Source: Octopus sinensis (lineage: Eukaryota). From it: a stretch of 39,094 nt of DNA. The stretch spans positions 1 to 39,094 of the forward strand of contig NW_021835148.1 in NCBI RefSeq assembly GCF_006345805.1, read 5' to 3'. Below the pieces are notes generated by a model. That model worked only from the letters and a program-made list of their open reading frames with translations, was not told where the DNA came from and ran no database searches. Made by a program: the position numbers and the translations under genes. Positions 1,317 through 37,118 of this stretch are shown here, piece by piece (position 1 is the stretch's first letter; the number at the start of each line of letters is the position of its first letter).

Positions 1317-1418
1317 TAATGCACTGAATTCCACTACAGCGGAGGAGATTCAAAATGACACCAAAACAATTCTGCAAGACGAGGTAACAAGTACCATAAG
1401 GACTACGCCAAATCTTCG
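1317..1418 (+). CDS. Phase-2 symmetric exon (102 nt): NALNSTTAEEIQNDTKTILQDEVTSTIRTTPNL
   Basis: Acceptor ccttttttttccttaatgccag, donor CG|gtatgt; the other two frames contain stops. Confidence 0.65.
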
Positions 1419-1857
1419 GTATGTACACCTCATTTACAATGGATATTGTCATATTCCCTTTGCAACATCTATGTACCCGTGAATCGTTGGTTCCACGTTT
1501 GAAATTTGTTTAGCAAAACGTTGGACATTATTTTGTTTTTAACATATACAGTATTTGCAGTTCCAAATACTGAAGGATGCAACACATTACCCATTTGTTT
1601 CTAATGTAAAAGAAAATGAATATCCGCAGTGATATACGACATATATTCAGGTCTCGATCCTTCTAAAAAATTAAGAGATCCTCTCGATATATATATACAC
1701 AAGCATGGACACAGACTCATACGGAGACACACGCACGCACACATACACACACTCACAAATATATATATATATATATATATATAATATATATATATATATA
1801 TACATGCGTGCGAGTGCGTCATTGTGTATGTGTGTTATTGTATGTATTTATATAAAG

Positions 1858-1932
1858 ACTAAGCATGCTTATCTGCGTCACTATCTCCATATCAGCTCAT
1901 CTGGATTATCTCTTATCGCTGCTCTCGATCCT
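1858..1932 (+). CDS. Tentative phase-2 exon (75 nt, or 69 nt from 1864), hydrophobic LSMLICVTISISAHLDYLLSLLSI
   Basis: Donor CT|gtaagt; acceptor only moderate (tatttatataaag). Confidence 0.4.
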
Positions 1933-2023
1933 GTAAGTCTAGACCTCAATGAAACTAAATTCGAAATGATTGCACCACTCATTCATGTTTTCTATTCTGA
2001 GTATTTCAAGTTCTCTCTATTCG

Positions 2024-2662
2024 GCGGCATATATATGATGGCTGATGAATTTGTATCCGGAATGTTGCAAAAGTATGAAGCAAAAGAGTTAGAATAAAGC
2101 CCATAGGAACATATTGAACCCGAATACTGCTGTGTATGCGCACTAAGGTTAAACTATAGCTTACTCTCGCTGTTTAAGCACTACTTGATTAAGGTGTGGT
2201 GGCGTTTGATAGTCGAATTGATATAATGTGTGATTGTTTCAAAGATGGCCGAAAAATGTCGATATGCGGGAACCGCAACCAACAGTACTGACAAAAATAT
2301 CGCGCCATGCGTACAGCTTTGAGGAAATCACAAAATCACAATACGCCGAGTTATGCAGGTTATATCGGTTGAGTCAGATCATTATCATCACGTTATCTGC
2401 TTTAATCTATCGATGACTATGAATATTTTTTGCACAAATCGCCAAGCTTTGATGCAGATTGTTTGCTCACATACTCTGTCATTTACAAGTCGATGATCGC
2501 AAGTTACACACATGCCATGGAAGCACTGCTGCACAACGCGGAAATTGGCTAGAATACTAAAGTTTTATGCGCAAGTGCTGGAGTTTGGCCAAGTGACTTA
2601 CTTTTCGCGTTACAGTTTGTTATCATGGCAACAGCCCAGATACTCAATAATCAGCCCTCGTA
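2024..2662 (+). mobile_element. Degenerate, internally deleted mariner element (copy 2)
   Basis: About 640 bp homologous to 4905-5559, with transposase N-terminal remnant and 3' TIR end agccctcg-ta. Confidence 0.6.
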
Positions 2663-2767
2663 AACACACACAAACACATACATGTATATATAGACATATA
2701 TATATATATATATATTATATAATATAGATATATATATATATATATATATATATATATATATATATAC

Positions 2768-4905
2768 GTTATATATTGTTGTTCCCATATTTTTTATGTG
2801 AAGTCGTTTGTTGAAACAGATATGTTATATTTCGGAATGATCATATTGCCAGTTTAGCCAATAAAACACACGTACTATATATTTTGGTTTATTTTTGGTG
2901 TTTTTTGATATTCATTTTTTACATTAATCATAATCTTATTTCGGCCAGAGTTCTTTCGTCACACTCCTGTGACCGCATCAGTGGTCCTTTGTTTCTTCTC
3001 ACATTATTTGTGTCTCTCCTTACTAACCGTCGGCCATTTTGTGGTGTCTTCAAATATATTGTGTCTTCATTTGCGCATGCTTATATCTCTGTGTGCGTCT
3101 ATGCTAATTTAGTTTGTGGGGGGGATGCCTGTAATATTTGTATCTTCTGTTTATATACATTCATGTAATTTTTGTAATTTTGATTTGTTGTTGTTGCTTT
3201 TGTTCTAATTTTGTTCCCGTGTTTACATCCACCCATTATTATCATTACATATGCTTGTATGTATGTATAACAACAATATTAGTAATAATAATAATAAATC
3301 TAACCGAAAAAAAAAATATATATAGACAATATACACACATACATACACATATACATATATATATATATATATATATATTATATATATATCGATATATATA
3401 TATATATATATATTATATATATATATATATATATACATACATATACATACAAATATATATATACATATATATAGTTATTAATTTATATTTGTTTATTTAT
3501 CTGTGTATTTATTATGTTTTGGAATCCTCTATCGTCATATGTTGTGGTGTGTGCTATTGCTCCATTCTCGTTTTCTATTCAGGCTAGGTTTATTTTCTAT
3601 TATATGTGTAGCTTCTGTAATTTGTCTAAATGTTGCATCTGTTCTATGTGTGGACAATATCTTAATCTATGTTATTGATTGATCCCCATGTTCCTGTTCG
3701 GCGTGTTGGTACAGAATCGATGAGCTTTTACCTCCTTGAGTTGTCTCCAATGTTCATTCTCCCCTTCTCGCTCTCTATCTTCTGCTGTTTCCCCTACGTA
3801 TGTTACTGTCTTGTTACTGCATCGTCCCTCTATACATCTTATACTATAGACTACATTTCTGGCTTTACATTTTGTTTGTGGGCTAAATCTACATACAGTG
3901 CAATAATTACCTGTACAGAGGGTTCTACTAAAAGGATAGGTTCTACCGATTATAGATTTGATAGGAGGGTTGCCTGGCTTTTCAACAACCTAATTCTTAG
4001 TTTAAGTTTATCTAGGGTCCTTCTAAGCGGTACGCCAGTTCACCTCCGGGGTGGTGTCAACGAACATGACACTCAGGTATTTATGGCTATCATACCAAGA
4101 GTTGGCCTTCCCTATTTTCTTTTTTGTCCTTTCTATAGTGTTCCATGACTTGTTCCTATAGACTGGGCAAATCCCATTCCTATCATTACATAATATATTA
4201 TCAAATTTCTTCATGGCTCCTTTGTATACTCTGATCCTTTCTTTATGGCTGTAACCTGAGAACTGCATGTGGTGAATGAAATACTGTATGTGTCTCTTTA
4301 ATTCTGTAGGCTCGCACATCGTGCACATTTCTCATTATTCTGACAAGGTCTGCCATCAAAATATTGAATTTGGCATTGCCGCAATGGCTGAGTTCCGTGG
4401 ATCAGGTATTTTGAGGCATAGGTTTTGCATAGTATGAATGAAGGATTTGGGTTTTATTTTTCACAATTTCTAGCCAGAGTTCAGTGTCTAGTACTGGTAG
4501 TCTATGGTTGGGGTGTTTAGTTGGGTAGTCTATTGTGACTTTAATACTCTTGTGGATGGAGTTAGCTATTTGCTGGATGCTCTCCATATATAGTTTCTAT
4601 TATTAATTAACAATCATCAACTTACTCTTGTGGGATGCTTTTACTACTATGTTGATATCATCAACATAGCGAGCGCACATGTTTACGAGTATGGATTTCT
4701 GCAGTAGGCGTTCTTTAAGCTTCTGTTCCACTATACCATGAAAAAGTTGGCCACATCACCAGCGATACTAACACCGATGGCTGCCCCCCCCCTCGTCCTG
4801 TGCATATATTTTATTATTAAATTTAAATGTGTGGCCTTTTACAGTAACTCTTATACTAGCTCCTAGTGCATGTGCGATCATTTTCTTTACCTGATGGATA
4901 TTTGC
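2768..4905 (-). mobile_element. 5'-truncated Penelope-like retroelement (RT + GIY-YIG endonuclease + probable 3' pLTR), frameshifted
   Basis: Minus-strand peptides GHTFKFNNKIYAQDEGG.AIGVSIAGDV, RYVDDINIV (YVDD at 4657-4668), IANSIHKSIKVTIDYP..LPVLD, and NVVYSIRC...TYVGET...LNRKREW ending near 3535. Hammerhead-like motif downstream at 2943-2987. Confidence 0.9.
2943..2987 (-). ncRNA. Hammerhead-like motif with non-canonical core
   Basis: GGACCA-CUGAUGCG-GUCAC-AGGAGU-GUGAC-GAAA-GAAC-UC-UGGCC: perfect 5 bp stem II, near-perfect stem I. Confidence 0.45.
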
Positions 4906-35642: not shown

Positions 35643-35696
35643 TCGAGAGATAGACCCCGACGACATCGCTAGTGTTCTCTTCCAAGATGTGCGTTT
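35643..35696 (+). CDS. Phase-2 exon (54 nt): REIDPDDIASVLFQDVR
   Basis: Acceptor atactgtttttag, donor TT|gtaagt; only phase 2 open. Confidence 0.78.
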
Positions 35697-36168
35697 GTAA
35701 GTATCTATATTTTATTGTAACCTAATGAATGAATGATAACGGCTTCATTAGGAACAAAAGTTGAAAAGTACCAAATACGATTCTGTTAATAACCAATCAA
35801 CGTCAGGGTCATGCACGCACCATTCATGCGTTAACATCATTCGCTATGTATATTCGACCTGTGTTCACCAAAATACGGCCACTTTCATTTTGTTTCTTTA
35901 TAACTAGATCTCTTCTAAAAACCTACTGAAATATATTGATACAACAATTTTAATGGAGTTAATTGTATCTTTATACTGAGGTTGTATAGCTGTTCTATTA
36001 ACTTTGTACCAATTTTCCCCTTCCCTCTTAAAGTGATTGTAACATCTCTGCATATCTTGCGTTAAACCCCATTGTTACACTCTGAGATCTAGAGTGATAA
36101 ATGTCAAGAACAAAAATTTATTCTACCATAGTCCCGAAATGTATTCTGATAAAATATGTAGTGGCTAG

Positions 36169-36189
36169 TCGACTGATTGAACCAAGTTT
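36169..36189 (+). CDS. Tentative phase-2 micro-exon (21 nt): RLIEPS
   Basis: Donor TT|gtaagt is strong; acceptor gtggctag is weak. The better acceptor at 36131 gives a stop in phase 2. Confidence 0.35.
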
Positions 36190-36496
36190 GTAAGTGGTCA
36201 ATTTTATTGATTTGGCAGGATCATGCGCTTTTTAAATTACAACGTATAGCCTGAGGAATAGCCGAAAAGCACTAAAGGTCCTACTAACTCACCACGTAGG
36301 GCCGAAAACATGTTATATTGTAAATAATGGTACCGCCAGGTCAGCATTTGGCGAAATAACATATCGAAATCCTTCGCTGATTCGAAAATAATAGCAAATT
36401 AATAAATATGGAAAGCATAAAATTTGTATAGTTATTATAGTATACACTTATTATTGCGAGAAAAATTATGTTTAATAAGTTTCTTTCTCATTCAAG

Positions 36497-36589
36497 CTTA
36501 AAGGGCTTCCAGTTTCTGGTCAACGACTTTGAAAAGTATATCTTCAAATGCCTGGATGAAACACACAGAATGATATTTGTAGAAAACCA
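36497..36589 (+). CDS. Phase-2 exon (93 nt): LKGFQFLVNDFEKYIFKCLDETHRMIFVEN
   Basis: Acceptor tttctttctcattcaag, donor CA|gtgagt; only phase 2 open. Confidence 0.8.
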
Positions 36590-37103
36590 GTGAGTTTGCG
36601 TGTTTATTTTTTAAAATGTTCATTGTCATTATATTATATGGCAGTTGTATATATCTGTGAAATAAATGAGTGGACATATGTAGATGGATGAGTTTGCGTA
36701 ATTAAATATGTATAGCATATATATTAGGGACGTGGTAAATAAAAACGAAGCCATTTAGGAATTGGGACAAGAAAAAGAGAAAACTCTTGACTTGGCAAAG
36801 GTTCTCCTAAAGAATAAGGATTTATATTTACTTATTCTCTTCAATGCATTTTTTTATAATTCATTCTTTTTCATTGTCGCTTCACTCAGGTGTTTCTTCG
36901 CTCATTTATTCCCCTAAAACTTTGTCTCTCCTTTATTATTTCTTCGTTACGTACCGAGTTACTTTTCTTCTTTTCTTTCCTTCACTTACTCTTCAATGGT
37001 TCGTTACTTCTGTATTTCTATCTTTCTATTTTCCTTTCTTCTCCGTAATTATTGCCTTGAATGTATGCGCTATTTCCTTCACCTGTTTTTACGTTGTTCC
37101 CAG

Positions 37104-37118
37104 CATAGAAGTATTATG
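37104..37118 (+). CDS. Tentative last coding micro-exon (15 nt): IEVL + TG
   Basis: Strong acceptor tttttacgttgttcccag; moderate donor TG|gtaccc. Confidence 0.4.

Follow-up and report, generated by a model that had tools for sequence, protein, structure and literature searches.

Runs of small exons of one and the same intron phase underlie in-frame isoform diversity in a few well-known cases, namely the schistosome micro-exon genes (MEGs), the casein/SCPP genes and elastin. In the casein/SCPP and tropoelastin genes, whose secreted products have a repetitive or low-complexity sequence, nearly all internal exons share one phase (phase 0 in the former, phase 1 in the latter), and skipping or duplication of an exon stays in frame; phase 2 is the rarest intron phase. 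Here we analyse a stretch of 39,094 nucleotides of Octopus sinensis DNA (contig NW_021835148.1, positions 1 to 39,094, referred to below as the window), which carries the RefSeq gene model LOC115231142 and in which the supported coding exons are bounded by phase 2 introns on both sides. In schistosome MEGs most of the coding region is divided into tiny symmetric exons, 6-81 bp long and as a rule of 15 bp, and their products bear a signal peptide, are secreted and are varied by splicing (PMC10526429, PMC4350168); these genes have been reported as restricted to platyhelminths (PMC4350168).

According to our analysis the window represents, with a probability of about 0.8, the internal 35 kb of LOC115231142, a member of a tandemly duplicated gene family restricted to Octopus. 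The window is an unplaced O. sinensis scaffold, and its gene has already been predicted in RefSeq though it is uncharacterised: the model XP_036355856.1 (P0003), named "uncharacterized protein, partial", maps to the window at 100% identity. An initial annotation of this DNA had listed 25 short segments as exons of a micro-exon gene with no recognisable homologue. The last point fails, as the RefSeq model exists and its family has at least eight Octopus loci; the segments themselves are indeed all bordered by AG and GT and divisible by 3 in length, and the nine said to be open only in the phase 2 frame are exactly so. As a list of exons, 11 of the 25 segments hold, being used by the LOC115231142 model or by models of close paralogues, whereas the other 14 have no model support and each at least one weak splice site. 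All 11 are phase 2-2. The gene's own model contains eight of them together with the last 5 nt of the 72-nt exon, and the 102-, 72- and 39-nt exons (at 1317, 9423 and 26843) are supplied by the paralogue models P0001, P0002 and P0004. On the plus strand the eleven exons form one reading frame, all twelve flanking introns are phase 2, and every one of the 22 splice sites is intact in the window, as are the exons themselves.

When the joined strong exons were used to search proteins, the matches were all from Octopus, and at least eight loci of the family are found in O. sinensis, O. vulgaris and O. bimaculoides. The O. sinensis relatives are LOC115212221 (a chromosomal locus, below L001), LOC115231167 (L003), LOC115231305, LOC115222984 (L004), LOC115220626 and LOC115220522; O. 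vulgaris contributes CAI9738190.1 and other "hypothetical predicted proteins", and O. bimaculoides LOC106881475, LOC106876345 (L005) and LOC106881480, with E-values for these paralogues and orthologues from 1e-20 to 1e-114. In addition, L002 denotes the gene of model P0004 on O. vulgaris chromosome OX597818.1 and L006 the O. vulgaris orthologue of the window gene, at 101.37-101.42 Mb of the same chromosome; P0004, P0006 and P0007 are O. vulgaris models, and P0024 is O. bimaculoides isoform X3. Distant members, 30-49% identical to each other across subfamilies, came from profile searches of 1.84 billion representative proteins and then of 5.8 billion, where the genuine members belonged to O. 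sinensis, O. vulgaris and O. bimaculoides alone. The same searches gave no relative outside Octopus apart from one weak repetitive match, P0013 (an ENA protein of 1,149 residues, E = 7e-6), which we judged spurious. Pfam has no family for the joined peptide nor for P0002, P0005, P0014 and P0019, a profile search of PDB gave no sequence match at E <= 1, an Rfam scan of the window at gathering thresholds gave zero matches, and nothing relevant was found in the literature on micro-exon genes in cephalopods or on the ten LOC identifiers of the family.

The window is colinear, introns included, with L001 (85-99% identity), L002 and L006. The match to L006 runs from 18704 to the window's end at 96.9% identity over 20.7 kb, and we take L006 as the orthologue of the window gene because it carries the copy-specific residues REIDPDDIAS of the latter. 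At least three family genes lie within about 220 kb of one O. vulgaris chromosome, and in this species the first exon of another paralogue is located about 7.5 kb downstream of the P0004 gene.

The ends of the gene can be recognised in its relatives. A 44-nt first exon, which ends in phase 2 and encodes a signal-peptide-like MRNI[IL]F.LILSVS.., is found in sister loci including L001, L002 and L003, and the two final exons, downstream of the 93-nt exon, are found in L001, L002 and L006: one of 50 nt for LCKAVKKSF.NILSWE, which passes from phase 2 to 1, and the last, which in L006 reads GEPPPEEDSFGYQPW-IGYVILSCGIVVLAAVLIV-RACYKPRRDT.... By tblastn neither the signal-peptide exon nor the membrane-anchor exon is in the window; the former lies upstream of it, the 50-nt exon about 2.2 kb past its 3' end, and the transmembrane exon also downstream. 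The stop with which the joined peptide of the initial annotation had closed (IEVL and a stop codon, at 37104) is unsupported and is not the end of the gene, whose real 3' exons lie beyond the window. The statement that the gene is built entirely of symmetric phase 2 exons is right for the internal coding exons in the window, but not for the 3' end, where the penultimate exon (50-68 nt) passes from phase 2 to phase 1 and the last intron is phase 1. As a separate observation, LOC115212221 is without 9.4 kb holding the 36-, 27-, 54- and 93-nt exons (L001 28051-28078 against 27377-36759 of the window), and its RefSeq model terminates in a 13-nt exon (FCHL and a stop codon); the 50-nt and transmembrane exons persist downstream in L001, at 32600 and 36296.

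The family keeps the architecture. The exons of L004 measure 53, 81, 96, 129, about 27, 39, 36, 27, 54, 93, 53 and 104 nt, and those of L005 measure 50, 84, 96, 138, 33, 30, 39, 36, 24, 27, 54, 93, 68 and 80 nt, with twelve phase 2 introns followed by one of phase 1; in both loci all introns but the last (phase 1) are phase 2, and 11 of the 12 internal exons of L005 are phase 2-2. Across L001-L005 the common layout is 96, 129-138, the linker micro-exons, 39, 36, 27, 54, 93, 50-68 nt and the last exon, and the window agrees with it for every exon that it contains. Paralogues on other chromosomes, including one of O. bimaculoides, keep the 96-, 39-, 36-, 27-, 54- and 93-nt exons and 11-12 consecutive phase 2 introns. 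The distant homologues P0011 and P0012 align through every exon, micro-exons included, and the distant sequences STKFLDFFGELV, EEDFLESVPVEK and VQNIKDWDS are the counterparts of the 39-, 36- and 27-nt exons. Since the layout is conserved in distant paralogues, the symmetric phase 2 architecture is ancestral to the family. About 25% of introns are phase 2, and twelve in a row would come by chance with a probability of 0.25^12, or about 6e-8. Internal duplication as the cause of the uniform phase was rejected, as hhalign detected no similarity between the N- and C-terminal conserved regions (probability 0.3%); exon duplication accounts for the uniform phase of the 102-nt exon only. The architecture is genuinely unusual and conserved.

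A lone symmetric segment open in phase 2 is no evidence of an exon, because about 280 of them arise per shuffled strand under loose splice rules (the actual plus strand has 412 and the minus strand 199). Under strict consensus rules, the plus strand has 9 symmetric exons against 2 on the minus strand and 1.9 +/- 1.1 in shuffles. With acceptor and donor matrices trained only on the two distant paralogues L004 and L005, and with thresholds of 6/6 bits, 9 symmetric phase 2-open candidates are found on the plus strand, 7 of which are supported exons, and 0 on the minus strand. The excess of strong in-phase exons on the plus strand is beyond chance, and the comparison with shuffled sequence and the minus strand, which had been suggested earlier as a check on the gene, speaks in its favour. 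Purifying selection acts in the phase 2 frame only: between the window and L002 the ratio of the proportions of nonsynonymous and synonymous differences (pN/pS) in this frame is 0.24 (synonymous differences, Sd, 17.5 over 116.5 sites; nonsynonymous, Nd, 17.5 over 483.5 sites; p = 2.3e-5) with zero stop codons, against pN/pS of 1.1-1.6 and 17-20 stop codons in the two other frames.

The individual exons, all on the plus strand and all phase 2-2, begin with a 102-nt cassette exon at 1317-1418, which encodes the Thr-rich NALNSTTAEEIQNDTKTILQDEVTSTIRTTPNLR with two N-glycosylation sequons and is open only in the phase 2 frame; it occurs in P0001, P0002, P0004 and P0008-P0010 and is missing from the distant paralogues. 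The 72-nt exon at 9423-9494 (LPGVNLPFVNFKSREHAWEVFFM-), whose terminal ATGAG (5 nt) begins P0003, is 100% identical in L001 and has homologous exons of 81 and 84 nt in L004 and L005. The first conserved cysteine is encoded by the 96-nt exon at 11229-11324 (LSTCSGNKLFKAKLLYTRSIMIQSMDKFWDEP), used in P0003, P0001 and P0002 and matched by a 96-nt exon at the same position in L004 and L005, and the second by the 135-nt exon at 12520-12654 (YMKILLFFPIYDFKYSEHITIGKTFKCFHEVFSDPFDTQKTIRI-), with homologous exons of 129 and 138 nt in these two loci. Diverged direct repeats, 78-85% identical, are located beside (TA)n tracts at 1-296, 2024-2777, 4904-5761 and 6452-6921, and one region of L001 is matched by them several times. 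They look like remnants of a tandem unit of about 2.5 kb carrying the 102-nt exon, which is present in five copies in L003, two of which have lost the donor G.

Two 15-nt micro-exons follow, DNSLI at 17293-17307 (in P0003, P0002 and P0001, skipped in P0004; acceptor 12.8 bits, donor 8.7 bits) and PPLTS at 25780-25794 (in P0003, P0002 and P0004; splice sites 10.9/9.4 bits), the latter being identical in the orthologue L006. The 39-nt micro-exon at 26843-26881 (IKLRFVPFVSELV) is absent from P0003 and used in the paralogue P0002; it is 100% identical in L006, and an exon of the same length and position in L004 and L005 encodes the related STKFLDFFGELV. The 36-nt micro-exon at 28463-28498 (DEKFMKEVRYEI), in P0003 and identical in L006, the 27-nt micro-exon KHNNAHWKD at 29906-29932 (in P0003, P0004, P0005 and P0007), the 54-nt exon at 35643-35696 (REIDPDDIASVLFQDVRF; in P0003 and P0007) and the 93-nt exon at 36497-36589 (LKGFQFLVNDFEKYIFKCLDETHRMIFVEN-; in P0003 and P0005) have homologues of equal length in L004 and L005. 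Relative to L002 the 54-nt exon contains two mutually compensating indels and the frame is preserved. The 93-nt exon, which carries the third conserved cysteine, is the last coding exon within the window and is 100% identical in L006 with intact splice sites.

Judging from the sequence, the family product is probably a protein of about 200-330 residues located on the cell surface. All full-length members have hydrophobic N- and C-termini. The Thr-rich module of 34 residues carries NST and NDT sequons, and family alignments reveal two conserved regions with four conserved cysteines and the motifs KSRxHAWExFF, FPIYxFK, RFLKGF and FCxAVK, separated by a poorly conserved linker that the micro-exons encode. 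The window exons carry KSREHAWEVFF, STCSG, FPIYDFK, FKCFH, RFLKGF and FKCLDETH, and the fourth conserved cysteine is in the 50-nt exon outside the window. Members of the window's subfamily have a basic tail behind the C-terminal hydrophobic segment; in distant paralogues this segment stands at the very C-terminus and resembles a glycosylphosphatidylinositol (GPI) anchor signal. The product is most likely a small glycosylated, membrane-tethered surface protein, and our best guess is a lineage-specific surface glycoprotein of recognition or adhesion. In the distant paralogues P0014 and P0020-P0023 (L004, L005) the linker has dibasic motifs of the form RxKR/RRKRR and behind them a stretch rich in Gly and Leu (...SKRAI.LGK...GFLGNIASEGL...), which suggests proteolytic processing of these proteins; no dibasic RxKR/RRKRR site is present in the linker of the window copy.

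The likeness to MEGs, which the initial annotation had noticed, extends to a first exon for a signal peptide (in octopus, a predicted one), consecutive symmetric exons with lengths divisible by 3, long introns, product differences by whole exons that keep the frame (in octopus, between predicted models), and multi-copy, lineage-restricted families without known domains. All 11 window exons are phase 2-2, symmetric like those of MEGs, but the gene is not made mostly of micro-exons, since exons of 39 nt or less account for 19% of the coding nucleotides in the window (132 of 684) and for about a sixth of the internal coding sequence; 5 of the 12 internal octopus exons are of this size and the remainder measure 50-135 nt. 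MEG peptides are short, disordered and secreted, whereas in the octopus product there are conserved regions with cysteines and a predicted membrane anchor, and the profile searches of 1.84 and 5.8 billion proteins gave no sequence relationship to platyhelminth MEG families. The octopus gene thus resembles MEGs and is not a strict member of the class.

With its own paralogues the gene shares the motifs, the four cysteines, exon sizes, intron phases, the predicted signal peptide and the predicted C-terminal hydrophobic anchor. The window's subfamily differs from the distant members by the extra, amplified 102-nt exon and by a 15+15-nt linker without dibasic sites, in place of a linker of 27 nt, or of 33+30 nt plus an extra 24-nt exon, with RxKR-type sites and GPI-like C-termini. 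Compared with the casein/SCPP and tropoelastin genes, it is likewise of the same-phase cassette type, but in phase 2, and its exons other than the 102-nt one are non-repetitive and conserved, with no detectable internal duplication. The octopus family would be an independent example of such a system, found in a mollusc and in a conserved non-repetitive protein, with 11-12 consecutive introns of the rarest phase and with visible amplification and decay of an exon. It offers a tractable case for asking whether a uniform phase is selected for splicing flexibility or is a product of exon addition, and it adds one defined, lineage-restricted family of predicted surface proteins to the many octopus genes still named "uncharacterized".

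Every internal exon is phase 2-2, and therefore skipping, duplication or insertion of an exon causes no frameshift; a single residue, that at the junction, is altered, as from S to R. In LOC115231167 the 102-nt exon is repeated in tandem, with three copies intact and two decayed, and the predicted RefSeq isoforms X1-X4 of this gene combine the copies as A+B+C, A+B, B+C and A+C. P0004 and P0024 both skip the 96-nt exon, with an identical S-to-R change at the junction; P0004, P0006 and P0007 skip the 93-nt exon, which is nevertheless intact in L006; and the 15-, 39- and 36-nt exons likewise vary among models. The many in-frame isoforms that had been foreseen are therefore seen as whole-exon differences between annotated isoforms and paralogue models, all of them predicted, and alternative splicing is plausible from them.

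We propose that the product would enter the secretory pathway and would carry an N-glycosylated Thr-rich module of 34 residues, the copy number of which is varied by tandem exon duplication, followed by two conserved, probably helical regions with four conserved cysteines, linked by the stretch that the micro-exons encode. A C-terminal transmembrane segment would tether it to the membrane, with a GPI-anchor-like signal taking this place in distant paralogues, and the family would probably vary its ectodomain through skipping and duplication of phase 2-2 exons. We may even suggest, as a speculation that we consider rather unlikely, that a MEG-like system evolved in octopuses independently of flatworms, in which tandemly expanded, genus-restricted surface glycoproteins would acquire combinatorial ectodomains by exon skipping and by change of the 102-nt copy number, for instance for cell or self recognition.

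Several points weigh against our interpretation of the gene and of its product. The first and last exons are outside the window, and for one exon junction of L004 we could not place canonical splice sites. Between the window and L006 the exons have 2 mismatches in 264 positions against 1.3% outside exons (p = 0.33), a comparison that is uninformative on exon constraint because the divergence is too small. All isoforms are models of annotation pipelines, some of the skips may be missed exons, and the O. vulgaris annotation draws on a mixture of Iso-Seq, RNA-seq and protein-alignment evidence with ab initio predictions (PMC10700109). The signal peptide, membrane anchor and glycosylation are all predicted, and AlphaFold2, applied to two shallow family alignments, gave mostly helical but unreliable models (pLDDT, its per-residue confidence score, of 37.6 and 46.6).

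It is a serious possibility, if short of an even chance, that the gene is real and is spliced essentially one way, in which case phase 2 would be uniform as a relic of the gene's history and not as a means of making isoforms, new exons entering or duplicating in frame only within introns of the same phase, and the differences between models would be annotation omissions. Gene-annotation pipelines often miss small exons, and models do omit the 39-nt exon at 26843 and the 93-nt exon, both of which are intact and 100% identical in L006; the O. vulgaris models rest partly on ab initio and protein-alignment evidence, and skipping of the 96-nt or the 93-nt exon would delete one of the four conserved cysteines. 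On the other hand, the identical skip of the 96-nt exon was called in two species by two different pipelines, RefSeq gives four combinatorial isoforms of the triplicated 102-nt exon, and twelve consecutive introns of one phase are difficult to account for unless selection or a strong mechanistic bias was at work.

A further reading, improbable in our view, sees no separate functional gene in the window but a haplotig redundant with the chromosomal LOC115212221, or a duplicate of that locus in decay. The unplaced scaffold does truncate the gene at both ends and is colinear with L001 at 85-99% identity, but O. vulgaris has a distinct orthologue, L006, which is 96.9% identical over 20.7 kb and carries REIDPDDIAS; there are derived differences from the window that L001 and L002 have in common, L001 is without the 9.4 kb containing four exons, and in the window 11 exons and 22 splice sites are all intact.

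Scarcely tenable, finally, is the reading in which the full chain of 24 exons joined in the initial annotation, without 27767 and with the terminal 37104 exon, is the true transcript: all these exons have AG/GT borders and an open phase 2 frame, and most of the unsupported ones are conserved in sister loci, but the neighbouring introns are equally so, about 280 such segments per strand arise by chance under loose rules, real 3' exons lie past the window, and the extra exons each have a weak splice site, appear in 0 of 24 family models and have no counterparts in distant paralogues. The 14 unsupported segments start at 1858, 8137, 8234, 9002, 9569, 9679, 12753, 14991, 16581, 16971, 27767, 28077, 36169 and 37104; five had been called confident (9002, 9569, 14991, 16581 and 16971), and the other nine are all the tentative ones. 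None occurs in the 24 family protein models or has a counterpart in the exon maps of the distant paralogues, and each has an acceptor of at most 2.1 bits or a donor of at most 3.7 bits, whereas the supported exons have donors of at least 4.4 bits and, in 10 of 11 cases, acceptors of at least 4.1 bits, the exception being the exon at 35643 with an acceptor of 0.5 bits. Three of the segments are damaged in the sister loci L001 and L002: at 1858 the donor is gone and the frame broken, at 9569 the acceptor is gone and 4 nt are added, and at 36169 the acceptor is missing. Over half of the listed exons are probably not real, and with 14 of 25 unsupported much of the joined peptide is unsupported as well. 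Micro-exons with weak sites called by eye are mostly noise, and our analysis shows which of the hand-called ones deserve trust.

Two further in-phase segments were considered and rejected. The one at 16107-16157 (51 nt, open in phase 2, splice sites 6.9/7.0 bits) had not been listed earlier; its GT donor is present only in the window copy and is TT in both L001 and L002, and it represents a chance site or else a new cryptic exon of this copy. The other, at 22086-22145, sits within a retroelement.

The window is AT-rich (about 34% G+C), has many (TA)n microsatellites and carries several mobile elements. The intron after the 135-nt exon contains an insertion of 1,606 bp at 13370-14975, missing from L001 and L002, with 99-nt terminal inverted repeats (13370-13468 and 14877-14975) that are 93% complementary and with a target site duplication, AAATAA; we identify it as a non-autonomous DNA transposon of the terminal inverted repeat type, specific to the window gene copy. 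In the 8.5-kb intron between the two 15-nt exons the minus strand carries broken reverse-transcriptase open reading frames at 18269-24295, with RVT_1 matches at 19120-19854 (below the Pfam cutoff), 23612-23905 and 24011-24295 and a weak zf-RVT match at 22404-22727. These appear to be two decayed retrotransposons, probably of the kind without long terminal repeats (non-LTR), which L001 lacks, L002 has in part and L006 contains from 18704 onwards. Arrays of the trinucleotides ATT, AAT and AGA, together about 1 kb, follow at 24305-25308 and produce artefactual long poly-I, poly-R and poly-L reading frames on both strands. In the first long intron, a 196-nt inverted repeat (5888-6083 and 6266-6459; 95% identical, arms 182 nt apart) may be a foldback element or a miniature inverted-repeat transposable element (MITE).

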